Below are positions 9,013-55,789 of a DNA stretch of 64,000 nucleotides, piece after piece. A program made the position numbers and the translations under genes. Source of the stretch: Bugula neritina (Eukaryota; Animalia; Bryozoa); the NCBI GenBank assembly GCA_964035545.1, contig OZ037768.1:4310741-4374740 (forward strand), given 5' to 3'. Under the pieces are notes generated by a model. That model saw only the letters and a list, made by a program, of their open reading frames with translations. It was not told the DNA's origin and ran no database searches. The stretch's first letter is position 1; each line of letters starts with the position of its first letter.

Positions 9013-11675
9013 TTAGACTATAGCTTTCCTACTATCTGGAGAGAGACCTTGTAACATGAGAGCTAATGTACCCACACAACACACAGCTGTAAATATCCAC
9101 AGGAATAATCTATCTACAACCATAGCCACGTATTGCCAATCTTCTATTACCTGTAAGGAAATAAATGAATACATTTATAAAGCCTGTGTGAGGTTTGCTA
9201 ATTGGTTGTTCAATAAATGAGTTCAACTTAATATAGCAGCTACAGGGCAGTCATTGCAGCAGCAAATCACTTTACAAAAGTGTTATCATCGCATTAATAG
9301 AAACCTTGGTTTATCAATAACCAAAAAATTGTGGTCAAATAATTTAACTTTTAAGGTATTTTTTATTATAAAATAACAAATACTTTATTATAAAATAACT
9401 AGGTAATACAAATATTATAGCATATTACATTATGTGGCATTGCACCATGTGAGTTTCAAAGGTTTACCTTATCATCTTCATCTTCCATCAGCATATAGTT
9501 AGCTATAAACTCAATACAATCCAATGCTTCCTGCTCTGCAGCAGAAAGTGGGCTCTTTACTATCCCATGATGGCCGTTTTCTCTGGTATTAGAGGAAACT
9601 CCATTTGTAAACTTCTTGTGCGAATACAAAGATTGGAGTTCTATACTTGCTGTGTGAGCTGATGTTTTTAATCTAAAAGGTAATAATGTGAATCTAACTG
9701 AAGCGTTATGAGTTTTTAAAAACAAGAGTTAAATGCAAATATTCTTATGTGAGCCAAAGTTCTTTCCAATTTAAGATAGTCATGTTGAAAATTGTTGGTT
9801 TTTAATTATAAATTTTTAGCAAACACATTTGGCACAGCCTGCTAGAATTTTTATACTCTAACTGCTCCTTGCCATACCTTTTACGTGAAGTTGCAGCCAA
9901 GCATCTCTGTCGTAGTTTCCACCTTTTTGTTGCCTCTCCATTTTCCCTTTTAGCATAGTTTGGTCTTTTAATAAGAAGATATTTTGGCAGCTTTTCAATA
10001 AGAACAGTTTTAATCCATTGAGGCATCACGTGTGTGCTGACGGAACGGTAATGCAGGTTGAGTACCCCAACTGTTATGACAATAGAGCAGGTAACCAGGA
10101 TGAGTGTGAACAAGAGGTACTTTCCTATCAGCGGAATTACCAAAGATGTTGGCGGAATGAGTTCGGCCAGCAGCAAATAAAACACAGTTAGAGCGAGAAG
10201 GATAGATATGGACAGAGTGACTCTTTCTCCCGAGTCGGATGGCAGGTAAAACACCAGTATTGTTAGAAGAGAGATACCAACACACGGTACTACTAGGTTG
10301 ACAGCGTAGAACAACGTTTTTCTTCTTATGGTTAGATGAAATGTCAAGTCAGCAATTGCTGGATAACCCTGCTCATGTATTATATTCTTTCTAGCTGGGA
10401 CAGCGAGCACATCCCAAACAAACAAAGGTTCGTATTCTGACATGTCAATGGCCACATCGATGTCTACTTGACCAGAGATGTTTCCCTTATCTAGATGTCT
10501 CAAGTCAACTGTGAAACAAAATAAAACTATGTTACAATAAATATCATGCATACCATATTACATGTATATGTATGTAAATCATATTTTATGCAATAGAATA
10601 CTTTTATGCTCCACAGTAAATTTCCCTCATGGCTTGAAACATATAAACTTAAGCCAATAACCCATTTATCTCAGATCTTACAAATTACACAGCTACAAGA
10701 AATATATTTGAACAATTACTATACCTTGTTCTTGAAAATATGTCCAAGAGCTAAACTTCATCTCGCAGGTTTGCTCATCGAAGGGGAAGTACTCAACGTC
10801 GATAGCGCATGAGGATTTATAGAGCGCAGGTAGCTCCCAGACTACTTTACCGTCAGGATACACTGTGGCTTTGGTGGAAGATGCTGCTTGAAAGTTGCCA
10901 TCAGCGCTACAAGTTTGAATATTATTTCAATAAAGATATCATTGCAGTTAGTGATTCTTTTGAACAAACCAAAGTGTCACGCACATATTATACTCATACA
11001 GCTTGTTATACCTGAAGTACTATAACTCACTTGTTGTACAACACAATATCTGGCTGCCAGATTTCTTCTGCTGGTAAATAGAGATGATCAACTCCGCCAT
11101 AGTCATCCTGATTCCATGTGAAGTATATATCCCGCCACTCCTGAACTAACCAGACGTTGGTCGTCATCACCTGATTTTGTTCATCCTAAAATTAGATTGA
11201 TGATTCTTCACATGTAATCATTGTAGCAGTTGTCAGGGTATAAAGAGGCTTTAAGTTCTTATATATAACAAAGCATAATGCAGCAAGAAAAATACTACTT
11301 TATAACATAATATGCCAATAAACATAAATTTTATTATATTTATTATTGCAAAGCTTTATAGCTAGTAGCTCTATAATATAAGCATGTTTTATGATTGTAT
11401 ATTGCATGATAGAAACATAATGAAATTTTGTTGAAGACATTGCTTTTTCTCGGCATCAAGATTTAAAATAGTCCTACTAACCACTCCCAGTAGCTGTGTC
11501 AGACGGAGTCCAAGTTTCACTGTGAGTGTCTCAGAATCATTATTCACTGGTCGTATCAACTTGTCATAATCTTCCATCAGATCTGTATATAACCTTTTAG
11601 CATGTTCATTTCCATTCACTTGTATTACAGCTGTCCAAAGGTGTAGGCAGAGTATACAAATCTTTATGGTAAAAC
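9013..11675 (-). CDS. Nicotinic acetylcholine receptor non-alpha (beta-type) subunit (nAChR-2), tandem paralog of nAChR-1; first exon unresolved (candidate 11847-11830)
   Basis: Exons 11675-11482, 11185-11031, 10906-10725, 10508-9878, 9672-9468, 9150-9013 (TAA). Cys-loop [15 protein letters not shown]. Loop C reads [11 protein letters not shown] with no vicinal CC. SDSGER before M2. Same intron positions and phases as nAChR-1. Confidence 0.9.
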
Positions 11676-18200: not shown

Positions 18201-21200
18201 AGGTAACAAAATTACAAATAACTGCCTAGATTTGACTAATTGTAACATTGTTTGGAATGTAGATATAAACTTTCCCAGTATTCAGCTTTCTATAGATAGT
18301 TTTCTAATGACACTTTAGCCTAGGCTAGCTGACACCAGGTTACTGTGAAGGTGGTAACTGGGCCATCACCTTCACAGTATACACCAACATCAATTGTCAA
18401 AGGAAGTTGGAGTCATTTGCTGTGATAGCTTTAGATAATCTGTCTAATTGACACGAAATTTACATATGCGCTGCTGAAATTTACATATAGGCTGCCGAAA
18501 TTTACATATATGTTGTCCCAGTTTACATATAGGCTACTGATTGCTACAAGATTTTGTAATATTTGGCAGTTTTTGCAACTATTATGAGTACCAAAAGGTC
18601 TGCTATGTTTGTACTGTAGAGTGTTCTGCTATTGTGACATGTGTAATCCTCTGTACAAACACAGATCTGCATGCATTACACTTATCACACTGCACTGCAG
18701 GTGCTGACACGTGTATGTATGCTGTCTGAATACGTCTGCAGCAGCTTATTGTTCAGTGAATCTATTTATGACAGAAGATAAATGTATACGAAAATCACTT
18801 ATGCTTGATTGTTTAAACTTTAAACTGTGTCCATAATATATATTATTAAAGAATCAACATATAAATTGATTTACTCCAATTTGTTAAAACTTCATTAAAA
18901 TTATTTGTTAATTAATTTAATTTCACTGAAAATTGTAAAGTATTCAAAAATTTTCCCAACATCAGTTGGAGGAAACTCTCACCAGTTGTGTTGTTGAAAT
19001 GCTGTACTCAGTGTTGTTTATATTCAACAGCCTGTCTAACCTACCTGAACTGAGTGATCTAGAGAGAGTGCTCATGCTGTCGCACAGTATGGCAGCGTAT
19101 GCTACGCGACTCTCGGTTGACCACAGAGAGAGGTTCTATAAGAGAATCTTAAATGACACTACGGAGTGGGTTACAGCTCTCTTTAGGTGTGTGCACCATT
19201 TGCATATATCTCATTGTGTTTGGGTCAACAAGCGTAACAGAATAGTATACTCATTGTTTGTATGTTTCACCAGATTTAATAGGTGGGTTGTTGATTAGAA
19301 ATTAGTGATATAAAGTTGCCGTATGCTTTTTCGCCATAGAATTGTAGTCACAATTATCACCAAGTATATTCTTTAGAGACAGCAATAGGTAGCATGTATA
19401 GTTTAGATAAGGGTAGCCATTAAATAACTCCTAAAAATTAGGAGTCTATAAAAAATTTATAATTATTATTTCATTTTATTTTCTGTGAGTAACTGTGTGA
19501 CTCACAACTAGTCTAGCTCAGGCATACAGACTAGCAGGTGTGAGATTGAGTGTGCAAGGGTATGTGTGCTGTTTACTTAAACGGTTAGGAATACTATGGC
19601 TATATATGTAATATATTATTGTGTAGAATATACACTATAATTATGGCAGTAAGGTACAGTAAAGTGTAGATTATAGTTACTAGTTACTGATAGAACTAGT
19701 GTAGAATATAGTTACTAGTTACTGATAGAAGTAGTGTAGACTATAGTTACTAGTTACTGATAGAACTAGTGTAGAATATAGTTACTAGTTACTGATAGAA
19801 CTAGTAAGACTCTGTTTATGTTACAACTCTTAGAGTGAAGGACTCCACTGCCATGTACCATGACGAACCCAGTGAAGGGCTTATCAATGTGTGTCGTCTA
19901 GCCCTAGCTAGTAAATATCCCGACTACCTGGAGAAGGGCTTTGACTCCCTCTATTCCAAGCCTCCCGTCTTCTACATAAGTGAAGCCAGTTCCCCAGGCT
20001 TAGCTCAGGTTCTTTCAAGAGGGGTAAGCTTTCACTAGACTTTATTTATACACATGGGAGAAATTATGTCATTGTACCACACTGTATACTGTAGCTGCAT
20101 GTTTATATGTATTGTAATATACAGCATTGTTATACTCTGTGAAACTTACTTATTTGATATAGTTTCATCTCTTGCTATATGTTTTATTTTTGAGCTGTTT
20201 TGTTGTCAGGAGTTGAGATGATTTGTATTTATCGAGAAACTACTAGAGTACTAGTTGTTGGCTCAGAGATTCACCTCATCTGTTTAGACTCAATTAAACA
20301 TAACCATTTGATGTAAATCAACACAGCTATTTATATACATGGTGTATGAATTGTAGCTTGGTTTACCAGAAAGCTGTATCTGTGTTGTGCCATGCAAGAA
20401 ATCTGAAGCAGGTCAACTTCACAAGATTGTAAGTTTTGACAATGTTGAATCTTGTGTATAGTGTGGGTATGTGTATAGTGTGGGTATGTATTGTGTGTTG
20501 TGGGTATGTGTATAGTGTGGGTATGTGTATAGTGTGGGTATGTGTATAGTGTGGGTATGTGTATAGTGTGGGTATGTGTATAGTGTGGGTATGTATTGTG
20601 TGTTGTGGGTATGTGTATAGTGTGGGTATGTGTATAGTGTGGGTATGTGTATAGTGTGGGTATGTGTATAGTGTGGGTATGGTGTGTCTGTGTGTGCGTG
20701 CGCGCGTGTGTATGTGTTGTGGGTGTATAGTGTAGAGGTTTACATATGTTGGTTTCATTTAGATTTTAAAGAACCAGTGAAGTTGCTGTAAAGTAGATAT
20801 TCAATTAAATTATGTCTTATCGTCTATCCGCTATAGTTTAGTCACCAACAGTATTCCAAATTGTATACATTTATTAATAATTATAGATTATATGATATTA
20901 AAAGTGTTGCAGGCATATATATATATATGACTAAGTCAGGTGAAGTATGTGATGTATACTAGTGTACAGTGTACAGTGTGCACATTCTGCTGGTATTAAA
21001 TATGCATTCAAAGTACAAACATAAAAGCAAGTTTGTTTCGAGTTTATGCCTCTCCACTTCTCTATTAACTCACGAGTGTCTCAAATTGCTTGCAGGACAC
21101 GGAGGCATTTGAGTCGTTAGTCGGTGACCACATGGCATCTACGAGGGAGCCAGTGCTTCTCTTGGCGTATGCGAGTATGTCTGCACGCGTCTACACATGG

Positions 21201-22399
21201 TGCTGTAGTGTGTACTGTACACACATCAGCACACTGTACTGTAGTATATACTGTACATACCTCAACACACTGTACTGTGGTGTATGCCGTACTGTAGTGT
21301 ATGCTGTGCACATATCAAAACTTTGTGTGTTGTAGTGTATACTGTTTACATATTCAGCTAGTGTTTACATAAAGTTAATAGATTGTTATTGTAGAGTGAT
21401 AACTATATATTTTTGTGGTTCTGGCATATAGTAATAGTACAGTTGGCTAGTTTAGTTGCATTAACTGAGTATTCACTCATTGTGGTTGAAGTATAGGTTT
21501 GAGTGAAGTAATGGACACTGAGCCTTTACACTAGAGCTGATAACTCGTGAGCTTCAAACGTCTAAACATGAAAACTCTTTTTATTCTCCTGAGTGATTGA
21601 GATTTGTCTTCTCGTAATTAGTTGGCATACTATGCTATACTAGCCATGTAAGCTATGACTCATAGACTAGGAACTTTATACTCCAATGTTCATGGTTTAG
21701 GTACTCCTATGTTGGCTGCTGTCGATCCACTTCAGAAGCTGAAAGCAGTTTGTAAAGCTAAGAATATCTGGCTACATGTTGAAGGGTTAGTGATACATAT
21801 CAGCTTGACGTGTGTGTGCGTGTGTGCGTGTGTGTGTGTGTGTATAAAACACATTTGTTGTGTGATTCCATAGCACCTGTGGGTGACATTACAATCTATT
21901 TCATTCCTATGTTTCTTGCAGCCTCAACCTAGCCACACTGTGTCTGATGAGCATACCAACCAACATAGTGTCCGCGCGTACCAGTGACAGCTGCACTCTG
22001 GACATGGCCTCCTGGTTCAGCTTCCCCGGCTCACCCAGCGTCACGCTCTACAGGAAGGAGAGCGAACCCACTGCCCAGTTGCTCAATCTCACTAATGAAT
22101 CTAAAACACAGAAACTTAAGTGTCTCCCACTCTGGATTGCCTTGCAAGCTGTTGGAGTGGACGGCATGATAGAGCGGGTGAAATCTGCAGTACAAATGGT
22201 ATGTCTGATCTCTCTTTCAGTCTCCCTCCCTCCCTCCCTCCCTCCCTCTCTCTCTCTCTCTCTCACTCTCTCTCTCCCTCCCTCCCTCCCTCCCTCTCCC
22301 TCCCTCCCTCTCCCTCCCTCCCTCCATCCCTCTCCCTCCCTCCCTCCCTCCCTCCGTCCCTCCCTCCCTCCCTCTCTCTTTCCCTCCCTCTCTCTCTCT

Positions 22400-22461
<62 letters not shown>

Positions 22462-25400
22462 GTCTCACTCTCTCCTCCTGTATGGTATTTCCTGGCCAAT
22501 AGTTACTCAATCTACCCCTAGAAACTCGTAGTTATACGCATTTCAACTCGATTTAATCTCTTGGATGAGTTGCTCGTAAAAATATTGTTATTGGTTGGAT
22601 CCGTGCATTAAAAGACTCATTATCCGTTAATAAAATCTTTTCATTCTTATTTTAGCCACAATTTTTGTGTATAAAACACGAATGTCTTTTTATAAGAACT
22701 TGAGAAGTATTTAGACTCACTTAAGCTGCTGTTGAGTAATACGTGTTGATTCGTATGTTTGTAGACTGCAGACGTATTACAGTTCCTGTCAAAGATCCCG
22801 GCTGTACATATCTTGGTAAGTGATTTCATCAGTCAATCGCATTGGGTAACTTTTAGCTATGGTGGTGGGTGCTCTTCTATCAGCTCAACATTCTAGCCAA
22901 CTAACACGCTCTCCCAGCTTGTAAATATTGCTTTGCTTAATGTTTACTAGCTCTGCCACTGATTTGTACAAAGTGAGAATCTTGGATGTCACATGTTTTA
23001 TTTGTTTAAAATTAACTGCCATTAGAGGCAAAGCTCTATTCATTAACATTGCATGAAGTAATGCTCATTTCAAGTTTTAAATATTTATTAAGTTTAGTTT
23101 CTTATATAAACGCTCCTGCTGCAATTTTACGGAAAAGTAGCATTTTATTGATTGTTTTACGTAATAATGAAAAAATAAGTGATGTTTTGCATAGTTACAA
23201 CTCTAGCATAAAGTCTATAAGCTAATGTAGGAAGCATAGGGGTGGGAACTTTCAACTTTCAACAAGCTAATGGAAACTATTTTTGGTCTTACTTTTCCGT
23301 GGGAATGTTTAACCTCTTCCTGTTGGCTGGAATGCTGCTAATCCGTGATGGCGGTGACTTGATTGTAGAACAAAAAAGCCAAGGAACAAACTAAAAAGGG
23401 TGTAACTGAGTATTCTGGCCTGGGGGATCTGCTGGGTCAACTTTTGTCTGCCATTGTGAGTATTGACTGAGTGGTCTTAACTGAGTGCTGCCGTAGTGTG
23501 CTGCTGCTGCCGTGATCTTAGCTGAGTGCTGTTGCTGCTAGCTCTTCTATCTGCTATTTTGACAGTAATTGGTAATGCTGTAGGGTGGTAGTTGTCTGCC
23601 CCTGAAATTTGTGTGATTCATTATAATCTAATGCATGCATTCTCCGCATGCTCTAACCAATTAACATGTTTACAGAAAATGATTTCTTTTGCTTCTCTCT
23701 ATTACCTATGTTAAGATATATCTTTAGAAATATTAACCTTCACCTCGGACTAGGTCTTTCAAGTTTTTCCCTTAGCCTTAAATCTCACAATGCTTGTGAG
23801 ATTTTAGTACTAGTACTTTAGTACTAGTGTAATAAAACTATTTCTTTATAAGATAGTAAGTATTCATTTTTTCTAATTATTGCAGCAATTGGTCATCAAT
23901 TTGCACTGGCTAAAATATTGCATTTTTGCAATAATTTCGGGAAATTTTATATATTTTACATTTTAGTTGGTGTTTGAAATGGCCACTCCAGTTGTGATAT
24001 TCAAGTACGGGAAATCTCGAGAGGCGCCCGTTCCAGGTATGTTGTGCTATGTATTCTAGTGTAGTGTTATTCTATATAGTTTTGTGTCTTATGTAGTGAT
24101 GTGTGTTATGTAGGGTTGTATGTATCGTGTGATTAAGTAACATATGTGTAAGTTTTCTTCCATGAATTTGGAATTGCCCTCTTTAGTTCCTGGCGCTGAA
24201 TAATTTATTGCCGAGAATCCTACAGTTTTCCACTCATTTTCAAAGTTTTATTGTAATAATTTACTTTATGAGGATGTGTAGTGCTCAACACTTTCTTTTT
24301 TATTTTATAACTCCCAGACAAATAGTCCAATCAGTTAAATATATTGCTTCACTCTGTATACATGTAGTAAAGTTGTAAAAACGGCATAATTTAAAACTAA
24401 TTTTCCATTTTTGAAAAAGAGATGGTGCTGAATTTGGAATTGTATTCTTTTTTATGCTTAATCTGGCTGTTTATATACTAAACTCATAGTATAAGTATTT
24501 TTGTTACTCCCAATGCAATTTGCATATAGTGTAAAATAAGCATATATTTTGTCACTGGTGGAATTTTGGAGTTGTTGCACCTTGCAAGTACAAGTACATG
24601 CGCGTTTAATGATTCAGTGCAGAGTTGTATTTGGATGCTGTAATTGCTGTCAACATATTCCTGCAGAAGTTGCTCCGTATGCTGCTAGTCAAGATCCAGC
24701 ACCTCAGAAAGAGGCTGATGGTGACAATGACGAGAGGTTGAACAGATATCTGGAGTGTCTCAACATCTGGGTGAGTTGTAACTTTGTGTTGAGATGACAG
24801 GATTGAAATGATTGGGCGATCAGTGTTTTTATGTTTGGTTGTATTTTAGTTGCATGTGGTAATGAAAACATAATAATATAATATAAGTTTTATATTATGC
24901 TATAGACATAATAGTATAATATAAGCATAATAATATAACATAGCCGAATAAACTGTTAATTCTGAATTATCGTCAATTCCAAAGTTTTATTAATGAGTAA
25001 TCAATATTGTTTTAATAATTTTCTAAGCTTCTAATAAGAGTTTTTGATTCCTTTAAATCTGCACAAAATCTATGAGTATTTTGAGTAGATACAAGCCTTC
25101 AGTTACATTCACTAATTAACTGTATAATTCAACAATACTGTAAACAATACCTGCTCAGTCGTATTGCCACTAGGTATCAACTTGTGCATTGCCTTTATTG
25201 ATTGATTCCCCACCTATTGATTAGCTGTGAATTGAAAAGACCTTTGCTATTCTCTGTAATTGAAACAATGCTTGCAAATAGAATTGTTGATATTTTGTCT
25301 ACAACCCGTAATGAACAGTCTATTCATCGCAACTCATACAACTTTTTGCCTAAATCCAAAATCATTTTATAAAATAAACAGTGACTGTGTAAAGCATGCT

Positions 25401-29507: not shown

Positions 29508-32500
29508 CTATGTTCCCCGGGGAAACATAGTTGCCAGTGATACTACAATAGATATCGTGTAGAGGCAGAAGAATGTTCTGTCCAGAACTAAGGCTACGGC
29601 CCTCCACTCCCCTCTCACCTTCTCTAGACTCTCCTGTGCCCTCTGTTTGTATATTAATGTCTTGATAAACCTTCTTATCTCCTTGACGTCTGACTCAAGG
29701 CTCTGGTACAGGTGTATAGGAGACAAGTCAGGTGACTGATCTACGTTCTCCTTGATAGAGTTCTTACTAGTGTGGGTGTGGTTGTTGTGGTTATTAGCAT
29801 TGGCTTGGTTCACTCTGTAGGTGCACGGTGAATCTGTTAGAGAAGACAACTCACGTGGCTGATACTTATTGTATTTCATTTCGTGAGCCTTTATTTTCTT
29901 TAGTTCCTTCCTAATTCTAGGGTCTGTTTCAAATTGAGAAGGTGGTTTGTCTTTTGGGACGTAATTTGTCATGAAAACTACTCGTGCTAAGCCCACCAAC
30001 ACAATCTACAAGGACATGCATAGTTGCTTTACACTCTGCAGTATTTTCCTGTTGAAATTGAAAATCAATGGTGCTTAAACCATCATGAAAATAACTATTT
30101 GCATTTGTGATATAGATAAACATTAAACAATGTTCAATATTTTACGTAGACCTTGAAATTTCTATACATGTTAAGTAAATCACTTGTATAATTTATGACT
30201 ACACCCATACTAATCCTATAACAGAGATACTCCCAAATACACATTTGAAAACTATCAAAACTTACTCGTTTAACCCAATAAGGAACTTTATTGGTTCGTG
30301 GACCGCGAAAATACAAGTGAATGACTACAACAGCTAAAAATGTCGATAAGGTTATCATAATCATGTTCAGACAGTAGTAGGCCCCTGCAATAGAGTAAAT
30401 AGAGAATATTATAACATAAGTAGAGAGGTTGCCCAATTTATTCAGCATTGTATATATGTATAGCTTGAGAAAAAATTGTCTGCCATAGTACTAAACATAT
30501 TTTTTTAATGTTATGTATAATGTGCATTAAAAATTCTAAAATTTTCTTCTGGTACCAAAAGTAATGATATATAGAGTTCTCATAGCAGACATTTTGAATT
30601 GCTAACTTTGTTTAATTTAATAACTTGAAATCACTAGAGTAGCATTTCCTTACAATAAGTGGTATATTGATTTCAAAAACTATACCTGTATAGTTAGCAG
30701 CCGACAATTATGTAAAAATCAAGTGTTAGTTATAAAAGAAAATAATATTAGTATTGAACTGTTAAACACCAAACTGGGTCACACAAACTATAATATGCGA
30801 AGTACTAAATATTGAAAATTAGTAAAGCATGCAAAAGCAGCAACCAAAAATCAATAGATAGAGTCAGGCTTTACAGCATTTCAATTTGTACAATGTGCTA
30901 TATGTGCATGTAGCTTGTGGGCAATAAACTGTTTAAATGCATTCAATGAACTCGATTTTTTCATTAGGTTAAATTAGAACCTTTCTATGTCAGTTAAACA
31001 AACCAATCAAATAATCATAAACATAAAATGTGAAGCACTCAAACAGATTTGTCATCTAACCTAATGTTTAATTGGCCAATTAATTTTGATTGCGATCTTG
31101 AAACTCAAACTATGCTGGTTTGATAATCAGGTCCTCTGTCTTGCTTTTAGCCCAAATAAGCAATTAACTGCAGCATAAGCATGTAACTTGAATTGAAGTA
31201 AATAATTAAATGTTATTTCAGAAAGTCAATTAGAATTGAAATGCTAGTGCCAATCTAAAAATGAATCAGTACCTATGCGGGGTATACTCTCTGAATCAGC
31301 AGGACACGAATCAGCTAACAGTAGTAACAACACAAAAAAGGCCACAAATATACTCATGCCTACAAATAGAGAATATTAATACAAGCCAACAGACTAAATA
31401 TTATATAAATCACTCTCATACATGTATTTTATAACTGGTACTTCAGATGTGCTGGGCTCCACAACTTCACTAACTTGACAAAATAAACTAATAATTATTT
31501 AGCCAGCGTTGAATTACCAGTTATTTCTATACATGTACAAAATCATAAGGGGGTGCTAACACTTCAAACAGTGATGTGCTTAATGCAACACTTTAAACCA
31601 GCTTGATGCAAAGCATAATTCCCTCATCAACTAATTGAAAGACATTTTCAGGACAACCCATGGTAATTAATGCTGATTCAGTCAAGCTGGTTAAAAGCAT
31701 TGCGTTTGCGAGTGGTGGAGTGAGTGACGTGGGGGTCTGCACAATGCTGCTGTTACCTATTAGCGGAATTGCTGCCGCAGCAGGTGGCGTGTTATCAGTC
31801 AATAACAGAAGTAGTAGAAAAAACGCCACAAAGATGTTCATTCCTAAAATTATATAACAATAATTTAAAATAAATAGTATACTAGTTTCTTGAACACAAA
31901 CAGGAATGTAATGGCTTTGCTTTGTTTTGTGTGAATGTCAAAGAATCATTCATGCAGTGGATAATGACTTGACATTGAGAATAGCTCTGCTTCTTCAATG
32001 ATATTTTGACCAGATTTTCTCAACTAATGCAAAATTATTGTTAAAATATACAAAAACTACTTATCAATAATTGCTAGTAATAATTTCTACACAAAGTGGT
32101 GTATTTCAAGTCTTTATATTCCAACAGCTGGCAATTTTAAATAATTTTCAAAATGCAGAGTAAAATATTATTTGTATCATAATATATAGTACATTTCATC
32201 ATACGAAAGCGATGAAAAAACGAGTAACATGTTAAATGGAACTTTCAGAATATATATATAAAGTGCATGATGCTTGCATATAATACCATGTAAAACATGA
32301 ACTGAAAATGCTATAAGGGCATTTACTCAGATTGTGTGTAAATGTACATTTACAGATGAAATTGCAATTGTACATTACCTGCTTGTTATTTTATAATTTA
32401 AATTTATTTATGATCATACGCACATCTAAATGCATGCGGATTTGCATTATGTCATCTACAATCAAGTTAAATTTGTACCATTGCATATTTTTTAAATGTT

Positions 32501-35500
32501 CAATACACGACTCAGAGTTTGTTCTGTGTAGAAAAGAAAGTTTGTGTAACACTAGAATGTTTCCCTAAAGACAAAACTAATGGTTTATAATTCTATTTAG
32601 TGGAAAAAGGAATAAATAATTATGATAAGAAAAGCACATCAAGCTTATTCCTTCTTCTGGAAGCCCAGTGTTACATTAGTAAAGTTTCTTTATGCTGTTG
32701 AAGTGTTAGGATAAAGTTTTCAAAACAATTAGTTGTACTAAAACAACTTCACTCCAACTGCATAATATGTTATAAAGTTAAGCTATTAGTCTGCACTGTG
32801 CTTATTGTATGAAACAGTCTAAGTAAGCATATATGCTGAGAAATATGCTTATTGTTGGTTATAGCACAGGTAATTCGTGCGGAGAGATAGTTGCACAAAA
32901 CTGAGCGAATCTAATGGGAAAAGGCACAACAAAGCTGATCTGCTGACAGCTACAAGAGGGACAGCTTACCCAGCTGCATTTTAGCAGCAGATTCTGGTGG
33001 CAGCCAGAATAGAATCATTGTCAGCAGGGAGAGCAGAACGCAGGGCAATATCAGAATGTAGTTGTAAAAAGCCACCTACAAAACCCAACCTATCATGAAG
33101 AAAATTAGTAAAGTTGACCTTGAGACAAGGTATACCAATAATTCCAGAGCTCTGATATGACTATTTATGTAATCAGTTCAACTGTGAGTCTCAGACTTAG
33201 AAAGTTGAGTTGTGACTTAAGTTTTATGACTTGCAGAGCTCTAGAAATGTATTGGTATGCCTTCAACGGCCTGATTTGTAACTTTGGCCGACACAAACTC
33301 ACCCATCTGCATCTTAGCAGGAGACTCAGGGGGCAGCCAGAAAAGCACCATAGTCAGTAATGAGAGTAGCACACAGGGTAATATCAGTATGTAACTGTAA
33401 AAGGCCACCTAAAAACTCATCACCAATAGTACAAGCATAAATTTATTTGCATTGAAATTTGTTCATTTCACTCCTAAAAGTATCATATATTTTATTTAGT
33501 TTAATATTTTATCTAATTATGATCAAATGTCACTGAAAAGCAGGAAAAGCTATGTTTCCTATAACAAGGCACTGTAATTTAATTTATGTGTTACAATGTA
33601 AATAATACAAGTTTTAACTCCACAAATGTCCACAAAGTCAAAGTATTTTGACTTCACAGCAATTTCCAACATACTAATCTGTTATATAACATGAAGCAGC
33701 ACAAGGTTGAATTTCTAACCAATAATTTTGATAGGATAAATCATTTGACTTTGGTGCTTGAACTTGCATCACATTAGTTTGAAGAGTTAAAAGTATCGAT
33801 TTTACCTGCCGTTTAATGACCACTGTAAAAGTGAGGTCAGGAAATGGCTGAGTGCAACACGGGTAGAAAATGACGTTCTTTCTACCGGGGTGAGCTAACA
33901 CGTCCCACTCATTACTAGGAACATAGTCCGTCAGAGAAATGTGCGGAGAATCCTAATAAAAAATACAGTTTCTAATTAGTGAGCCACATAATGGAATAAG
34001 AGTTCAAACACCCCCAGCAAACTATTGAGAGAGAGATGGAGTTATAAACCTGATTCTTAATTATATTATATAGAAATGCTTGTGGAGATCATTTATCTTG
34101 ATATTAAACTACTATAATTGAAAAATCAATGTCCATATCAGAGCTGCTTATGAAAGTATACAACAGCCCATACAGTGAAAAAAAGGCTGCACTGAAGTTA
34201 TATTAGACATGAGTGACCACTATTTGAAATATATAGTTATAGGAATATCTTACTTGATAGAAATCTATATCCAATTTTAATCCATCGTAAGACCAGGAGC
34301 CAAACTTGAGATGGCAGATTTGGGAGTCAAACGGGAAGTTTGTAATATCAATTGAGCAGGCGCTTTTAAATATACTCGTTGGAATCCAAAGCACTTCACC
34401 ATTCTCTGACACCACACAGAGAGCATCGCGGAACTCTGACAGTCGGTCATCAGCGCTGTAAATGTTACCATGACAACATGTAAACACATTTTGAATGTTA
34501 TCTGGAAGGTTTACGATATTACTTTGTTTGCTGATCGCAAATCTTTGAAAAAAAACTAATTTTTTAAATAGTAGTGTTGACAAAGTTGAGTTATAATGTT
34601 AAATTTCTGCCTAATTTATTTATAAAAAATGTAAGTAAACAGCAACTAACATGTAAAATCAAATACATCATTTTCTTTTATAAACAACTGTGAGTTATAT
34701 ATTGAAGGACACTGCTGGACCTAAGCAAATAAGTTGCCCACTTTTGTTTAAAATTGTTCCACATTTGTACCATACCCTTGTTTTTAAATACAAATTAGAA
34801 GTACATAATATATAGATCATTTTTGTATTCTGTAATTATGCATATGAAAAATTTCAATAGTTTCATTCTTATTAACACTGGTGAGAAAACTAATTGCACT
34901 TATATATAGAATACTTACCTTTGTTATATTACATATGCAATGCAATTGTTGTGTAAGTGGTTAATAATTAACAAAAGTTCTTTTCAAGCCTATAGCTTCC
35001 ATTCATATAATTACCTCTATTGTATGATCATGGGAATTGCCATAGGCAGTATGAGCATGATGCAGTTATGAGAAGACGCTATATCCACATACGTAGTAGG
35101 TGTGGGTGGAAAATTTACATTGTACTTATAGTAAATAGTAACAGTACTAAAAGAATGTATTATGTAAGCTGAGAGTTGAGCCTTACAGAAATGAAATAAA
35201 TTGAAATAAACCAACAAACTAAAGTTATAAAATTTAAAAAATTTTTGCATTTAAACTGTTTAGTATTTTTGATATTTGACACTTTCAAATAGAATTAAGG
35301 GATCTCGTCATAGGAAGGTAATATTAAGTACTCAATATACGAACTAGTTGTAAAGCACTAAGTCAGGTCTCCAAATATCTTTAGCAGGAACTCGAACTTC
35401 ACTGACTCCACCATAATCACTTGAGTTCCAGCTGAGTAGATAGTCTGTCCAAATCTGTTATAAGAATAATATTACTATCACAGACTATAAGCATTTCTGT

Positions 35501-38500
35501 ATATATAGTATTGATCATTTTCAAGAACTTGATTCTAACTGAACTAAATCTGCATTAAAAAACTGCTTGTATTTATATTTATTGTGGTTATTCCACATTA
35601 TGTGATGGTACGTTAATAAAATTTAACGAAGATGGTAGTATGATTTGGCAAACTCTACATTGTCATATCTAAAAGCAATTTAACAGCATGCAACAGTATC
35701 TTTGTATATCTTCACTAAAAATTACCACATGGAAAAAAACCGCTTTAATAATGCATGAAATTTGGAAGCCAACCGGTATTTAGATATAGTAGTTGTTACC
35801 AGACGGTTCCAAGCCCTGATAGTCAGTACTTGATTCTTCTCATCTAGTCTAAGAATCTGCACTAAGCCAAGTCCATATTTGAGAGAGATTGGTTCAGAGG
35901 AGTTTTTGACGGGTCTACCGGTAACTCCAGCCTCCTTGTATGTGTCTATGAGATCTTTTATCAGCCTCTTTTCATGCGAGAGCGCTAGATTACCTACCAA
36001 TAAAATCCAATTGTTGGTGAGTTTGATAATATCACACGCAAAAAAAACACATCATATTTTGGTAGAAAGCTGTAATGCATATTCGTAACCAAACTTTTAA
36101 ACATAAGCTATTCAGATATATAAATTATTCAAACGGCAACTTATTGAGGTTTTCAGAGTAATTCTATCTTGTTGAACGTTTAGAGCACATATTCAGTTTA
36201 ATTAAACATAATTCTACAGACTAAATATTAAATATTTATTTCCAAAACTTTAATTGTAATTAGTTGCTTACATTCAGTGAACTCTCAATATAAAAAGCAA
36301 GCAATGACATAAGAAAGAAAAGTGTATATATATTGAAAAATTCAATTAGGCTTTCTTACACTGCTATATAAAGTATACATGCAGCAAAATATTTCCCCTT
36401 ATTCAAAGATAGGTCATTCAGTAGCAAGGCAAGCTAATAAATAATATAGCTAAATATAGCAAACTCCATAAATGCAGAAGACTATCTTCAGTATGGCAAA
36501 GCAGCGTAGGCAATGAAGCATAACTTATATGACTTCTAACCTCACAAACTACGTTGCAGTTACACCTATAAAAAAAGCTTGTACAACCATTATAAAGGGC
36601 TTTTCATCTATATTTTGAATACTATTTTTATTAATGAAATTAATAAAAACATGCGCAGTGCAACAGCAAGCAAGCATAAGCGAGCTCTGACATGAAAAAC
36701 CTGTAACTGCATCTCATTCTATAGAATATGATTATAGATTTACACAACAGCTTGATGTTTACTTGATAACGAATTTGCATAGAGAATGTGCGAACTGGAT
36801 GTTGGTATGTTTTACTAAAACCGCTTCAAGGTGACAAGTAGTACCTGAGTGTAGATTTAATAGGAAATCAATCCACTCTGAATTATAAGGTGACACAAAC
36901 ACAGCTTATTGTGCTTAGCTGTCATTTCAAACACACAAATATGTAATAAATACATTATGCTATACTATGCTACAGTATACCATACTATGCTAAACTATAC
37001 TATACTATGCTGTGCTATGCTATGCTATGCTATGCTATGCTATGCTATGCTACAGTAAACCATGCTACTCTATGCCGTACTACAGTATACCATACTATGC
37101 TATGCTATACTATGCTGTAGCTATGCTATGCTATGCTATATTATGCTCTACTATGCTGTAGCTATGCTATGCTATGTTACATTATAATATTATATGATTT
37201 TGGGAATAGAACTATTAAATATGGAAATCTCTTGGATTAATGCAACTGTTGTAATAGTGGTGATAGCTAAATTCCCAGTTGGTTGAGCTAATGGTGTGTG
37301 GAGTAGATAGGACACCCCATCTAGCTGCAGATGAGCCACTTCTAAATCACTAAATCATATTATGGAAGAATCACTATATTGAGATATCCTGATTTTTGTC
37401 CCATTTACATACACACCAAGTTTATACTTGTATCTAGTCTAGGGAATTTTAATAATAGCTGCAAATGCTAATCAAACGGCCAACATAGTCATGTATACTG
37501 ACCCTATAGTTGAGCCTGTTTAGCTGAGTAAACACGAATATAGATGATAATTAGATAATCTGGGGACCAATCAATATATCCCAAATAATACTAAGTGTTA
37601 GTTGCATAGCAGACGCCTCCCCTTTGAATATATTGTGTTTCCACTGACCAGTATTGCATAATAAGTTATTTACACTTGATCTAGTTTTTACCCAACATTT
37701 TGGTAGATTCAAAAATGCTCGACTAACGCTCGCTTACAATCCCCGTTCTAAACAAGCTTCATAGAAATCCACATACACAATAAAACTAGTTATAGTGTAT
37801 AAACTGGCCAAATAACCTGTCAATATCCTTACCTTTAACTATTTTTCTACAAACTAGACACACTGATGTTAATTAAATAGATGTTAATTAAATAGAATTT
37901 ATATTTTTGAAATATGTTATCTATAAGACAAATAAGATTATTTTAAAATAAAACTGATTTAGTTTAATCAAAAGCCTGAAATCAAGTTTATAAATGTGTG
38001 TTGACAGTTAAAAGGGGATTAAACTTTTTCTAAAATAACCTCGATAATATTTACTGCATATGATGTTTTAATATTGTAATATAAAATATGTTATTTCAAA
38101 AAAGTAGAGTAGTGTGGGATAGAGGCATTCATGTCAATTTACTATGAGATCATGAATTAATCAGCTATGATATACCTTGATTTGCAAACAGGTGAAGTTA
38201 ATTAGTAAATTAGCTCATACGCTGTCTAATGGCCAATGTTCAATGAACTGTCTGCTGCCGTTACAAACATGGATTTGCACTAATTGCCTTAACTTTCAAA
38301 CTCAGTACAACGCAAGCTGAGCATGTTGATAAATATTTTTCAAAGTTAACTTCTATTCAAGATAGTTATTAGCCTCTAATTAGAATAACAATCTCATTGT
38401 TTTGGGAGGTACAAACAAGAATTCTTATATGACAAGTTGAAAAATTAAAGCATTGTTTTAAGGCATGACAGAGATGGTGTGATTTAGTAAGTTATAAGTC

Positions 38501-50474: not shown

Positions 50475-53400
50475 TTACACAAAATTGTTGTTCAAAATAA
50501 AAATGGAGCTTTTTGCCCAACATAACATGTTTTTACAACTTCTTCCAAAAGTTAAGAGAAAATACTGATTACTGACTGAGTTTAGATTACCATATGCAAT
50601 TTTGGTCAATACCTTATACAGGAAGACAGCGCTTTCAGAGCCACAAGCAATGGCTAGAGTTTGTTTTGATATCGCCATATCATAGCCAAGAAAATCTTTA
50701 GGTAGGTCTATGGCTAAACATCCAAACCGCTTTCCTACAACCATATCACATGTACTTGAAAAGGTCAAGTCAAAATTTCACACTTTTATAGACAGCACTG
50801 GGTACACATTAGAGCACAAAATTGAAATTCAGTTGGGACATCACAACGCTTCAAATTTAAAGGAAATATTACTTTTATAGATGCAACTTGTAAAGAAGCA
50901 GAATAAGGCCAACCAGAAAAAATATGCTTATAAACTACACTTGAAATAAGAAATAATACAAGTAGTTTGCAGTCTTATAACTAATAAATGCAATATGACC
51001 AGCACAGACTTGCTTGAAGTTGTTGATATTTGGATACTCAGACTCTCACAAACCTGTAGTTAAATCATACACTTTAATGGCGCCGTCTTTCTTGCTATAA
51101 GCAAAGAGATATTTTCCTTTATAGCAGTGTATACCAAGTAGTTGGTCCGTACAATGGTGGATCCACATGACAACATTGCTGCTAATGTCTAACCTGTACA
51201 GTCTACCGGAAAGAGAATCATTGATAACCACAGAGGTTTCATCTACAGCTGCGATGGAGATGAAGCCTTGGCTAAGAAAGGGACAAGATATGGTCTTACG
51301 TACTCCGCCCTTTGTGGGTAGCACCACTAGCATCTTGTTGGGCCTGTCTGGCACCACAAGTTGATAGTTTACGACCACAAAGTTCATAGAGCTTTCAGTT
51401 GTATCTCCATTAATGATGGCCCAGCGTCTATCTGGTTTACCGTTGGACTTGTGTGTATAAACTATGAACGTGTTTTCTTTTTTTGTCAATGTGTAAAATG
51501 TACCACGGCATTCGGAGATGTGACATATCTCCTCATCAAATCCCTCTACAACCGGCCCGCCTAACTCTAATCCTTTTTCGATTCGAATTATTGTTTGATT
51601 ACGACCAACATATATCCTGTTTTTAGTCGAACACACAGATATCCCATTCTTGCTGGGAGAGAATTCAAATTGATGTATTGGAGACAAGAGTGCAGAAAAC
51701 ACCACCAGAGACTGCTGGGATTCCATCAACTTGCAGATATTAGATGGATTCGGTTTCCTAACCAGAGAAACAGATTTTTTCAAAGATGGTAAATTTTCCA
51801 GGTTTACAAGTTCTATTGGTGACATTTCCAGTTCTAAAGTTGGAGGGTGGTCTGAAAAAGTACAATGCAGAAATACTTGTAGAATATCTATAGTCAATAT
51901 GAACGAACTTGAGAAGGTCTTGCATAGGATTTTATCGGTTTGATTTCTAATTTACAGAATACATGTAAGATAGTGCTAATCTTCAAAGCTTATACGATGT
52001 ACATTTGCAAATCGAGATTACAACACTACCTGGGAGTTTCAATTTCACCGACTGTATGCGTAGAGGAGACAAATCTTCATTTGTTACACTTTGAATGTTG
52101 TCTTTCGTCTGTTTAAAACTTTTAATAATATCAACCTAAAATAAGAACAGACCAGAAAGGCTGATGTTAAACTATAAAATTGTGCTGCAATCACATCTCC
52201 ACTAAGCATATTATAAACATAACAGCTTGTCCAGTTTGAACACACAGCAAACAACATGAGTTACTGAGCCTCTACCTCATCAGACTAACATTAAATAAAG
52301 AAGGAAATTTCTTGCACAGTTCAGAATATTATATACTTTCCAGACAAATAGTAACAAAATAACAAGCTAGATAGCTATTCATATGCATGCTGAACATCTA
52401 GATGGCGTTATATTATGCTACCTTGTGACAATATTTTCTCCCTGATTGGATACACAGCCTATACTGGGTTAGTTTAGCCAATGACTGTCCCAGATTCTTT
52501 TCAGCATAATCTACCAGCTCATCTTGTGTTTTCTTTCTTTTCTCCACCAGTTGACTCTCCAACTTTGCATAGTGTGCTTTAATCGCATTCAACTGTGTAC
52601 AGAATAACCAGGAAATAAACAAAAACAATAACATGCTCTTATCTACACATGGAGCCAGGTCTTTTTTTCTAAAACTTATAAGTAAATGTTTCACTTGAAA
52701 CAGGAAAAAGGAAACATATTCAAAATACATGATGTTGTTAGTATGCTGTGGGTCACAAAAATTAATCAAATAGCCACATCAAAGTCACATCTCATTGTTT
52801 AAAAAGTGCCAGCGATAAGGATATAACTAAAACATTGCAAATCTAAACTAATTTTATATACCTGTTGGTCTTTAGTTTTTCGCACCAGTTTAACCATCTC
52901 CTTTGTGTCTTCCTCGTAGTTCGAGACACTCACAGAGATTTTCTTAATGAGTGTAGAAATTATCTTCTCTTTGCCCAGAGCTTCAGCTGACAACTGGTCT
53001 AGTAGTTGAAGCAGTTCCTCAAACAGATCATCTAGTGGTAGCAGCTGGTGTGCCTTCCCTAGACCCAAACAATACACCCAACTACTGCTAATCCCGAGTG
53101 GATAACTCCAAGTGCTACAGTATTATGGCTAAAGGTTAGCCATGTCTGTTTTTATAACATAAGTGCGGCAATAATGCTCCTAACCTACACCTAATAAAAG
53201 AAAGTGCAGTGCTTGAGTGACATTATGGACACTTGATTTTCTGACTCACCCTCAGAGCACTGTGCAAGACCTGCCAGACATTTCACACAGAACAACTCTT
53301 GGCATGCTCTGCATCCAACTGTGTATGGTAGCTCCTCATGCGTTGCGCAACTTTTCACTTCTAACCTCTTAGCCTGAACTTTATACTCCTCTATGCTGAT

Positions 53401-54677
53401 ACCCTGATGACTTACAAAGACCTCATTGTGCAACTGCAACATAAACCTTGGCTAACTCATCCAATGAGCAGACTTTTAACTCTTTCAACTAACAGAATTT
53501 CATAGTGTTAATAAAATGTACAACTTATAAACATAATCTAATATATAGGAATAAATCAAAGAGGAAATAGAAAATCGAGTAATGCTAAGAAGTGCTTTAA
53601 CCATAATGTTGATACCTACATTAATGACTTGAGCCTGTAGTTAGTAGTATATAGTTATCTGTGTTGAGATAACATATTGAACAGCGTAAAACAAGTACTT
53701 AGTATCAATATCAAGTATCAATGCGTAGAACAGGTGTACTTAGCTTACCTTCTGGTGTGCAGGACAACACTTGACTGGGCAGGTTGGACAGTAAACCACG
53801 GCAGCCACATTGCTGACACCTTTTTGGAAACAGGAATCACAGGCTATGATAGGCTCAGGTTCAAGATTGTAGTCTGGTAGGCTGTCTACTGAGACATCAA
53901 ATGCTTCACTGCCAAACATTCAACAATAAGCAGTAGACTAGAACTTGGCTATTTACCAGTCAGCAAAGCTTTAGTAAACTCTGTACCAGAAACACTTCAG
54001 CTAAATCTTTTCATCCATCTAAGATATTCCTCTATTTTAGTAAATAGTTTAGGAATAGAGGCTATTAACTGATAACATAGATTAGGTTTCTTCAATGAAT
54101 TTATTGCATACAGTTCACTGCTTAGTTGCAGGCTAAGTGGCAACAAGGCTCTGATCAGTAAATAGTAAAGTATTTTTCAAGTGTCTACTGATGGGTCCAA
54201 TCTAACCCTTGAACTCTGGAGCAATAAGATTTTACAGAAACTGCTAGTTGCAATATTTCTTACAGATAGCTTTCTAAAATCTAAGCCTTGAAATTTAGGA
54301 AACTAGAAATGGCAATTTAACCCATCACCATACCTACCTACAAAACCACATTATCATTGTTAATATGCGCTCTTTTAGAAACATGCTAGTATATTAAAAA
54401 CGTGAACTTATTTATTTATTTTAAAATTAAAGATATGTTAAAATGATTATACAAAATGACGTTATTTGTACTTTTTGAACATTTTGCAATTTTATAAAAC
54501 ATATCACCTGCAAGTTGGACATTGAATCAGATTGTAGGTTTCGTAAATGCTTATTAAACACTCTTCACAGTGTATATGAGAGCACGGCAAATGCTTTGGG
54601 TTAACTAGAGAATCTTCTGTGCGCAAGCAAAGAGCACACTCGACTCGGTCAGTTGGGGTTGCTGCACCTTCAGCCAT
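50475..54677 (-). CDS. TRIM-like E3 ubiquitin ligase: RING + B-box1 + B-box2 + coiled coil + divergent NHL-like beta-propeller; 3' end uncertain
   Basis: Exons 54677-54508 (C3HC4 RING CALC..LPCSHIHCEEC..CPTC), 53908-53749 (CDSC..YCPTC..CPAH), 53433-53250 (CATHEE..GCRACQELFCVKC), 53058-52862, 52592-52422, 52135-52030, 51851-51054, 50734-(50613 or 50475) are in frame. Confidence 0.85.
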
Positions 54678-55789
54678 GCTTCAGTGAAGATACTTTAAAT
54701 AGAAGTTATACCCGTCAAAATTTTTCAAGCTTCAAGATTAAACTTGATATATAAACTTACATCGTCAGTTACAAATAGTAATTAGTAACTGACAGCTCGA
54801 GACTGTAACCTATTAGCTCACTTACACTAACTCTCCCAAATATTTAACTAACCAACTCTTGGAGTAAAAATGGTAGCATCAATATCATATTCTCTTCATC
54901 ATAAAGTGATCATGTTGCGATTATCACCATACAGTTAGACATAAGCCTAAGCCCAAGATTTTAGTGACAGATATTGCTCATTCAGTCATTGCTGGTATGA
55001 TTGAATTTGCAATACTTATAGTCATACTTGAAGTAGTCATTGAGTTTGACATAGGACTAGGAGTAGGTGATAGGGAATGATGTTATTATGATTATGATTT
55101 TCGCTATGAATAATACTACATGTCTATAACTATTACTATGACTTATGAGTAAGAGTTTGAGCATCTTTATCAGTATAACTATAAGTATATATCCGTAGAA
55201 CTCTATGAATAACTGTAAGACTCAAAACAACGCTAACACTAACAGTAACAACTAGTACTACAAGCACAGGTATTGCAATAAAATTCAAATAAATAATTAT
55301 AAAATCAAGTCAAATTGAAATTGCCACGTTAAGTCTAATACTAAATCTAATAGTTATACTTATACTTATAGTAATTTACATTCACTTTCAGATTACTCAG
55401 CTACACTTACACTTACAGTTACTGCTAGCCTTAAATTAAAGTTACTGTCACACTTAGTGAGTGACTTACAGCATCTAGTACAATAAATCAACAACAATTA
55501 CAATGTGAATACTAGTATTAGTATGACTATCACTCTGACTATGAGATAATCATAATCATAATGATAATCACTTTATGATAATGTAAATGAGCAAGTGTTA
55601 GTGTAACACTAACAGTAACAGCAAAACTAAGTCTTAGTCTAACAGTAACACTGTAACACCAACAGTAACTGAAATTCAAATTGAAATAGAATTTTTTTAT
55701 TTGAAATTTAGAGAAAACGCATGAAAACATATTTGAATTAACACTTGTCTGTTGTCATAGGGGTGATAGGCCTCAAGTAATGCTTGAAT

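Follow-up and report, generated by a model that had tools for sequence, protein, structure and literature searches.

A conserved pair of candidate mutually exclusive exons that differ at pore position -2' in an anion-clade nicotinic-receptor-like gene of Bugula neritina

Gene structure and family membership

The window analysed here, a 64,000-nucleotide stretch of contig OZ037768.1 from the bryozoan Bugula neritina, carries on its minus strand a gene of the Cys-loop receptor superfamily with two consecutive pairs of alternative exons, A and then B. Its features are given below in the direction of transcription; L098, L093 and L028 denote orthologous loci.

35800-35993, minus strand: first mature ligand-binding-domain exon (Pfam E 3.8e-07)
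35345-35454, minus strand: ligand-binding-domain exon with the W-x-P-D region, 110 nt (Pfam E 1.2e-11)
34254-34455, minus strand: Cys-loop exon, C-x13-C with FPFD (Pfam Neur_chan_LBD E 7.5e-20)
33806-33952, minus strand: constitutive exon preceding the A pair, with loop C (YPCC, alpha-type) and pre-M1, ending in phase 0 (sequence and splice sites; Pfam Neur_chan_LBD positions 169-215)
33303-33408, minus strand: exon A1, 106 nt, M1 helix, M1-M2 loop and first M2 residues; filter P(-2') A(-1') K(0'); AG acceptor, GTGAGT donor (Pfam Neur_chan_memb E 7.5e-08)
33076-33302, minus strand: A1-A2 intron, 227 nt, with long-stem arms at 33127-33154 and 33234-33263
32970-33075, minus strand: exon A2, 106 nt, alternative copy of the A1 segment; filter A(-2') A(-1') K(0'); AG acceptor, GTAAGC donor (Pfam Neur_chan_memb E 1.4e-07)
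31757-31843, minus strand: exon B1, 87 nt, M2 from 4' on and M2-M3 loop, leading member of the second alternative pair (orthologues in L098, L093 and L028)
31273-31359, minus strand: exon B2, 87 nt, alternative version of M2 and the M2-M3 loop (orthologues in L098, L093 and L028)
30266-30384, minus strand: M3 exon (Pfam Neur_chan_memb)
29508-30005, minus strand: last exon, with the intracellular loop, M4 and stop codon (Pfam)

The signal-peptide exon lies further upstream of 35800-35993 and was not located. B1 and B2 diverge from each other far more than A1 and A2 do.

Searches were made with single exons or with database proteins as queries, and trees were built from per-exon alignments, with counts summed over exons. 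The extracellular part combines the C-x13-C loop with PF02931 on four exons (best E 7.5e-20), and the four-transmembrane part is represented by PF02932 on A1, A2, the M3 exon and the last exon, the M2 exons being recognised by alignment to relatives. The vicinal cysteines that mark alpha-type nicotinic acetylcholine receptors (nAChRs) are present as YPCC in the loop C exon (33806-33952). All database relatives of the gene are annotated as nAChRs, among them the 'subunit type B' entries of Lymnaea and Biomphalaria and flatworm 'acetylcholine-gated chloride channel' entries, and the gene is closer to nAChRs than to GABA, glycine or GluCl receptors. With the bryozoan relative P0151 as the query instead of the joined gene model, solved alpha4 and alpha7 nAChR chains are matched at E about 1e-91, above 5-HT3; the last exon has its best database match in P0001 (60% identity, same C-terminus). 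In a per-exon neighbour-joining tree, the gene groups with the bryozoan Watersipora within a lophotrochozoan clade characterised by a Pro-Ala filter. The protein collections yielded no protein of this species derived from a transcript.

Anionic nAChRs are defined by a Pro-Ala motif (PMC4055736). Both A exons lack Glu at -1' and carry Ala(-1') and Lys(0'); A1 reads P-A-K, and A2 is without Pro(-2'). The PAK filter occurs in about 122 of the 130 family members surveyed, and among the nAChR M1 exons located in the genome, all others read G-E-K or close variants. These sequence features place the gene among the alpha-type nicotinic-receptor-like subunits of the lophotrochozoan clade that includes the acetylcholine-gated chloride channels of Lymnaea and Schistosoma, and its channel probably conducts chloride. 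The Lymnaea anion nAChRs (van Nierop et al. 2005, as reported in PMC4055736 and PMC6896357) and SmACC of Schistosoma (PMC4055736) fall by sequence into the same clade, have an nAChR-type ligand-binding domain with YxCC, and replace the intermediate-ring Glu before the basic 0' residue with Pro-Ala (PMC4055736). However, as described in these sources, their subunits have a fixed Pro-Ala motif, and anion selectivity is what we infer for the present gene.

The A1/A2 pair and its conservation in relatives

The first-pass annotation of this DNA had placed two 106-nt exons here, ending in ESPAKMQMG and ESAAKMQLG, and we find them at this place, on the minus strand and with AG/GT borders. The translations end in ESPAKMQM (A1) and ESAAKMQL (A2), the codon of the final G being completed by the next exon. 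That annotation also held that S/N and V/I were the only changes beside P/A; both are present, but the count has to be raised to four amino-acid differences, as M/L at position 3' had been printed there without being counted. The two exons differ in the window by 16.5 synonymous and 4.5 non-synonymous changes (dN/dS 0.04). A repeat search of the region returned a single direct repeat of 118 nt (81% identity, spacing 333 nt) and no other repeats, so the likeness of A1 and A2 reflects true duplication rather than chance. In the window as well as in L098 and L093, the two neighbouring exons are homologous, match in length and phase and have intact splice sites; the A1/A2 pair carries every genomic hallmark of mutually exclusive exons.

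Orthologous pairs were located by a degenerate-pattern scan of metagenome contigs, which showed two further species to have the PAK/AAK pair:

L098:4441-4546: A1 orthologue, PAK
L098:4869-4974: A2 orthologue, AAK; 322 nt from A1
L093:1906-2011: A1 orthologue, PAK
L093:2061-2166: A2 orthologue, AAK; 49 nt from A1

L098 is the closest orthologue, with ligand-binding exons 86-92% identical. At the DNA level, reciprocal best matches among the window, L098 and L093 join A1 with A1 and A2 with A2, and the donors are constant in the three species (A1 GTGAGT, A2 GTAAG). Conservation of the P/A split in orthologues, which had been put forward as a check on the first-pass reading, is borne out by both loci: the copies differ by four amino acids in the window, by two in L098 and by one in L093, and the only difference common to all is P/A at -2', which in L093 is the sole one. 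Pairwise comparison of the A2 orthologues gave synonymous/non-synonymous differences of 17/1, 16.5/2.5 and 19.5/1.5 (binomial P 1e-7 to 1e-9 against neutrality). Few non-synonymous against many synonymous changes indicate that A2 is a maintained coding exon, and with dN/dS values of about 0.01-0.04 both copies are under purifying selection. The L093 exons have been homogenised over their 5' two-thirds, and nine of their 13 differences lie within the last 32 nt, around the filter codons (P 0.004). Judged by these comparisons, selection preserves the P/A split between A1 and A2.

A single PAK exon only is present in the L028 orthologue and in an in-genome paralogue on contig C5, and in the RefSeq isoform sets (bryozoan, cephalopods, gastropods, nemertean and brachiopod) the M1 exon is invariant and PAK only. 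The lack of the pair in these three sources indicates that the splice switch is restricted to one lineage. Taken by themselves they had made the pair look private to this genome, a view overturned by the L098 and L093 pairs of the metagenome scan. The introns of L028, examined for the route by which A2 was lost there, did not align with those of L093.

An AAK filter fits an expressed subunit, as it is found in P0020, a spliced, full-length transcript contig. P0020 belongs, together with L035/L087, to a stand-alone AAK-only paralogue group of other animals whose M2 starts with INIF, and which also takes in non-alpha AAK subunits of oligochaete-like contigs. In a maximum-likelihood tree of the 106-nt exons, the A2 exons of the window and L098 group (UFBoot 90) with AAK exons from other genes; given the 106 sites available and gene conversion in L093, we do not use this placement to date the duplication.

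Reading frame and the intron between A1 and A2

Since 106 nt is 3n+1, inclusion of both A exons or of neither shifts the reading frame. In the window, A2 read after A1 meets TAA at nt 93-95 of A2, and exon E5 spliced straight onto B1 or B2 gives xxA TGA, with a stop as the second codon; upon double skipping, such a stop arises in five of the six B exons compared. In L098 and L093 the shifted frame passes A2 without a stop and would end prematurely further downstream. By frame computation both double inclusion and double skipping are non-productive, and the earlier argument that nonsense-mediated decay (NMD) could proofread this pair holds.

The 227-nt intron between A1 and A2 is predicted to fold nearly wholly into hairpins (MFE -61.2 kcal/mol, z -3.6, with none of 200 shuffles as stable), and its long stem matches inverted repeats I2 and I4. 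Three control introns of the gene gave z values of +0.3, +0.6 and -0.2. The equivalent intron of L098, which is non-homologous in sequence, has a z of -4.3, and that of L093 measures 49 nt only. The hairpin was also considered as a repeated element, which was ruled out by its single copy in the genome. With regard to docking/selector pairing, the window shares no conserved intronic blocks with L098 or L093 apart from some 10 nt beside the exons, and there was no convincing long-range complementarity.

The predicted folding suggests that steric hindrance enforces the exclusion of A1 and A2. In exon pairs of the alpha-tropomyosin exons 2/3 type, the intron between the alternatives is too short to be spliced, resulting in steric exclusion. 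The 49-nt intron of L093 resembles this arrangement, whereas the introns of the window (227 nt) and L098 (322 nt) would need the predicted hairpins to be shortened accordingly. The locus could serve as a compact model of exon exclusion enforced by introns that are very short or collapsed into hairpins.

Proposed role of the Pro/Ala switch and alternative explanations

We consider it probable that A1 and A2 are a conserved mutually exclusive pair in an anion-clade alpha-type subunit, in which the P/A switch at -2' tunes the channel and exclusion is secured by frame and by steric hindrance. We propose the following scenario, in which (i) each mRNA would take either A1 or A2; (ii) exclusion would probably be steric, through a 49-nt intron in one species and a hairpin-collapsed intron in the other two, and probably also frame-dependent, as transcripts with both or neither exon would run into premature stops; (iii) two isoforms would result that share one ligand-binding domain and present Pro or Ala at -2', the cytoplasmic constriction of the pore, which in anionic Cys-loop receptors is part of the charge filter and desensitisation gate; (iv) the switch would most likely alter single-channel conductance and the rate of desensitisation, with a possible effect on the anion/cation permeability ratio as well, whether the pore is a homomer or a mixed P/A ring. 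A change in the sign of selectivity is unlikely because Ala(-1') and Lys(0') are kept in both forms, and both isoforms most likely conduct anions. GABA-A beta subunits have Ala at -2' and are still anion channels; as the exchange of Pro for Ala is itself mild, the functional effect could be small. We predict that the A1 and A2 isoforms differ in conductance and/or desensitisation, not in selectivity sign. The first-pass interpretation as a whole is partly supported.

The -2' proline has been described as both desensitisation gate and charge filter (PMC10011588), and desensitisation is controlled by the M1-M2 linker (PMC4410641). Substitutions of this proline in GlyR alpha1 (P250T) and GABA-A gamma2 (P302L) lower conductance and accelerate desensitisation (PMC5301078). 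Anionic Cys-loop pores are tightest at position -2', which is central to questions of charge selectivity, conductance and the desensitisation gate and has so far been probed through mutagenesis and disease mutations. Here, evolution would have isolated it as a splice-selectable variable; the result would be a minimal Pro/Ala experiment set up by nature and kept by selection in an anion channel of the nicotinic type.

The closest parallel is insect nAChR alpha6 with its exons 8a/8b/8c and 3a/3b, which are likewise tandem duplicates of equal length in a nicotinic gene and exchange a portion of the channel domain; these exons, too, are old and conserved, occasionally lost in single lineages, and conserved between orthologous copies in protein rather than nucleotide sequence (PMC1919356, PMC5111602, PMC6393475). 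In contrast, alpha6 channels conduct cations and have Glu in the filter, the alternative exon of alpha6 spans M2 and not the segment from M1 to -2', and no variant that toggles -2' has been reported for it; in the present gene, two pairs follow one another, A and then B. Filter-toggling splicing in acetylcholine-gated chloride channels was not reported in the literature searched, which covered few subscription journals.

A further reading is that one gene builds heteromer-like pores, with A1 and A2, possibly linked to B1 and B2, supplying alpha-like Pro and beta-like Ala positions of the -2' ring, so that cells could adjust the P:A ratio of desensitisation gate and filter through splicing alone, and with A2/B2 standing in for the AAK-only paralogue group, which was not found in this genome. 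The underlying alpha-like/beta-like analogy, already drawn in the first-pass annotation, has backing in the literature: the same residue pair occupies the same position in glycine and GABA-A receptors, with Pro in GlyR alpha and in GABA-A alpha and gamma, and Ala in zebrafish GlyR beta (PMC10011588, PMC4410641, PMC5301078). In those receptors, however, the two states belong to separate genes with different ligand-binding domains, whereas here one gene would provide them with a single ligand-binding domain, and the GABA/glycine receptors form another branch of the superfamily. We regard this reading as unlikely. In a broader sense, the locus illustrates that exon duplication can reach a pore diversity gained elsewhere through duplication of genes for alpha and beta subunits.

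It is more doubtful still that both exons are used while P/A is functionally neutral and the pair is kept for RNA-level reasons such as cell-type-specific splicing control or linkage to exon B. Chemically, the exchange is a mild one, functional anion channels (GlyR beta) and the AAK-only subunits of other animals have Ala at -2', and the adjoining B pair, which differs far more, may carry the functional change. Yet P/A is fixed in all three species and has persisted as the sole L093 difference although the rest of the exons was homogenised, and other substitutions of the -2' proline strongly affect GlyR and GABA-A conductance and desensitisation.

We hold it to be very improbable that A2 is a regulatory 'poison' exon, whose joining to A1 would create a premature stop, trigger NMD and lower receptor output, the AAK peptide never being made. 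The frameshift on double inclusion, with its stop within A2 in the window, would suit such a role, and the unusual intron structure could regulate double inclusion. However, the shifted-frame stop is not kept within A2 of L098 or L093, the 49-nt intron of L093 makes A1-A2 joining unlikely, and A2 is conserved as an exon translated in frame 0, its amino acids kept while synonymous sites diverged; poison exons are typically conserved in nucleotide sequence and not in one frame.

Least credible of all is a silent or decaying duplicate ignored by the spliceosome, with the PAK form alone being made: PAK is near-universal in the family and the L028 orthologue and C5 paralogue work with a single PAK exon, but an unused exon would be expected to gather indels, stops and replacements, whereas in three species with synonymous sites near saturation A2 is unchanged in length, still has an open frame and retains its AG/GT borders, at 1-2.5 non-synonymous against 16.5-19.5 synonymous changes.

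Exon pair A and the receptor gene

Sequence comparison indicates that A1 and A2, two tandem exons covering M1 and the M1-M2 filter, are an alternative pair that is conserved and under selection, with the residue at pore position -2' as the difference that is kept. The pair described in the first-pass annotation at 32970-33408 is real; its PAK and AAK ends (residues -2', -1' and 0') were seen, while the amino-acid differences number four (S/N, V/I, P/A, M/L) and not three. A repeat search of the region returned a single direct repeat, formed by the two exons (81% identity over 118 nt, spaced by 333 nt). Each exon covers M1, the loop between M1 and M2, and three residues at the start of M2. Open stretches on the strand of the pair supply the other exons of a Cys-loop receptor, and Pfam located Neur_chan_LBD and Neur_chan_memb on the gene's exon pieces. 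Sequence searches used single exons or database proteins as queries.

Exons of the receptor gene (window coordinates)
35800-35993, minus strand: ligand-binding exon, open stretch
35345-35454, minus strand: ligand-binding exon, open stretch
34254-34455, minus strand: ligand-binding exon, C-x13-C with FPFD
33806-33952, minus strand: ligand-binding exon, loop C bearing the alpha-type motif YPCC
33303-33408, minus strand: exon A1, 106 nt, AG before and GTGAGT after, translation ends ESPAKMQM
32970-33075, minus strand: exon A2, 106 nt, AG before and GTAAGC after, translation ends ESAAKMQL
31757-31843, minus strand: exon B1 of the second pair, M2 and M2-M3 loop, 87 nt
31273-31359, minus strand: exon B2 of the second pair, M2 and M2-M3 loop, 87 nt
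30266-30384, minus strand: M3 exon, open stretch
29508-30005, minus strand: last exon, open stretch

Conservation and selection

Whether the P/A split recurs in relatives was examined by scanning metagenome contigs with a degenerate DNA pattern encoding W-x-P-P-E-S-A-A-K, which gave 63 matches, about 30 of them genuine M1 exons. The closest orthologue found, on contig L098 with its 3' part on L051, is 86-92% identical in the ligand-binding exons and 95% in the M3 exon. The PAK/AAK pair is present both there and on contig L093, so that the P/A split noted earlier is conserved in these two relatives, and both contigs also carry both B exons.

Exons of the orthologues (contig coordinates)
L098, 4441-4546: A1 (PAK)
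L098, 4869-4974: A2 (AAK)
L098, 6045-6128 and 6599-6682: B exons
L093, 1906-2011: A1
L093, 2061-2166: A2, 49 nt from A1
L093, 2324-2407 and 2474-2557: B exons
L028, 3667-3750 and 4180-4263: B exons

All six A exons of the window, L098 and L093 are 106 nt long with AG/GT borders, the donors are GTGAGT for A1 and GTAAG for A2 in all three species, and reciprocal best DNA matches pair A1 with A1 and A2 with A2, which together place the duplication before the three-species split. The orthologue on L028 shares the C-terminus and two B exons, yet has a single PAK exon; as the per-exon tree is ((window, L098), L028), A2 was most likely lost there. A paralogue in the window's genome (contig C5) has a single PAK exon and a single B1-type exon, and the RefSeq isoform sets of Watersipora, Octopus, Lineus, Lingula, Patella, Pomacea, Physella and Gigantopelta show no M1 variation.

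In the window, A1 and A2 differ by 16.5 synonymous and 4.5 non-synonymous changes (dN/dS 0.04). Orthologous A2 pairs give synonymous to non-synonymous counts of 17/1, 16.5/2.5 and 19.5/1.5 (binomial P of 1e-7 to 1e-9 under neutrality), an excess which argues that A2 is retained as a translated exon. At the protein level A1 and A2 differ by four residues in the window, but by two in L098 (V/I, P/A) and by one in L093 (P/A only). The 5' two-thirds of the L093 exons are nearly identical, which looks like gene conversion, and nine of their 13 nucleotide differences cluster around the filter codons, within the final 32 nt (P 0.004). This reduction to P/A, together with the clustering, points to Pro/Ala as the maintained difference, and provides the strongest support for the earlier idea that splicing toggles the filter.

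Pair B is kept more widely than pair A, in all four bryozoan-like orthologues (window, L098, L093, L028), and, 87 being 3n, is not policed by frame. M2 exon alternates also occur in RefSeq isoforms of Lingula (P0163 vs P0345) and Octopus (P0164 vs P0359). Several annotated proteins from molluscs and flatworms, isoforms or models (P0363, P0365, P0217, P0218, P0224 and P0297), skip the M2 exon and pass from the filter straight into M3. Either the annotation is at fault or products without M2 are real.

Filter type and expected effect of the switch

The last exon, searched by HMMER against the whole library, matched mostly exon-sized fragments (best 60% identity). Full-length proteins from HMMER matches, and word searches using them, yielded a large lophotrochozoan set of molluscs, annelids, a nemertean, a brachiopod, flatworms, rotifers and the bryozoan Watersipora, with names including Biomphalaria/Lymnaea nicotinic receptor 'subunit type B' and trematode 'acetylcholine-gated chloride channel'. 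In the literature this clade is that of the anion-selective nicotinic channels, whose defining feature is Pro-Ala at the site of the filter glutamate (PMC4055736). Among about 130 members, the filter is PAK in 122 and AAK in only one. The best matches of the Watersipora relative among solved structures are the alpha4 and alpha7 nAChRs (E ~1e-91), and the C5 paralogue is close to Watersipora (82%). PAK/AAK filters in the window's genome are confined to A1, A2 and this one paralogue, the other nicotinic M1 exons found being GEK or close variants. Two further nicotinic-receptor genes in the window (minus strand, ~4420-4671 and 10084-10332) have the usual cation-type filter G-E-K; their M1-M2 segments lie in long open frames (G000:C4:4315160-4315411, 4320824-4321072).

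Conversion of alpha7 into an anion channel took proline insertion, glutamate loss and a 13' change together (PMC6800317). Since A1 and A2 both lack the filter glutamate and carry Lys at 0', both forms are expected to be anion channels, with the sign of selectivity unchanged. In GlyR alpha the -2' proline forms the desensitisation gate and belongs to the motif for charge selectivity, and in zebrafish GlyR beta the position is occupied by alanine (PMC10011588); substitution of the -2' proline in GlyR alpha1 (P250T) and GABA-A gamma2 (P302L) lowers conductance and accelerates desensitisation (PMC5301078), which in GABA-A and glycine receptors is controlled by the M1-M2 linker (PMC4410641). By analogy, the A1 and A2 forms would be expected to differ in conductance and desensitisation, and perhaps in permeability ratio.

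In other organisms, AAK-only subunits occur as separate genes (contigs L035/L087, and transcript contig L033, which is spliced and encodes P0020). These form a long-branch paralogue group with one AAK M1 exon and one M2 exon beginning INIF. L050, L061, L076 and about 20 similar contigs, presumably from oligochaete hosts, have an AAK filter, an M2 exon beginning MSVF and no Y-x-C-C. Their subunit is a non-alpha member of the lophotrochozoan clade, so that Ala at -2' accompanies a beta-like subunit there. No separate AAK-only gene was found in the window's genome, which leaves room for A2, perhaps with B2, to fill that role.

Proposed mutual exclusion of A1 and A2

The prediction that double inclusion or double skipping shifts the frame was borne out: 106 is 3n+1, and in the window A2 read after A1 runs into TAA (A2 nt 93-95). 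Inclusion of both also shifts the frame in L098 and L093, where the stop must lie beyond A2. When both are skipped, the phase-0 end of the preceding exon meets a B exon, and five of the six B exons then read xxA TGA. The 227-nt A1-A2 intron of the window, single-copy in the genome, is predicted to fold almost wholly into hairpins (MFE -61.2 kcal/mol, z -3.6). Structure is exceptional as well in its unrelated 322-nt counterpart in L098 (z -4.3), and unremarkable in three other introns of the window gene (z +0.3, +0.6, -0.2); the A1-A2 intron of L093 measures only 49 nt. From these predicted folds we infer steric exclusion, in which the distance from the A1 donor to the A2 branch site would be too short, or shortened by structure, blocking A1-A2 joining; in classical cases, this distance is likewise too short for joining both exons. 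A 17-nt hairpin-loop stretch (33185-33201) is 76% complementary, as an inverted repeat, to the A1 E-S-P-A-K codons (33312-33328) and might, tentatively, mask the 3' end of A1.

Mutually exclusive pore exons are found in the insect alpha6 nicotinic receptor gene (PMC1919356). The predicted A1/A2 switch is a novel variation on such exons and on anionic nicotinic channels; literature searches, of incomplete coverage, found no published description of this switch.

Upstream of the receptor gene, a TRIM-like gene is suggested at ~52400-54700 (minus strand) by open frames that encode a RING finger (C-x2-C ... C-P-T-C-R), cysteines resembling a B-box and a segment resembling a coiled coil. Simple or short-period repeats at 20330-20770, 22050-22500 and 59230-59520 produce long spurious open frames (H/T/Y-rich, ER/GR-rich, 'HSYTK' period).
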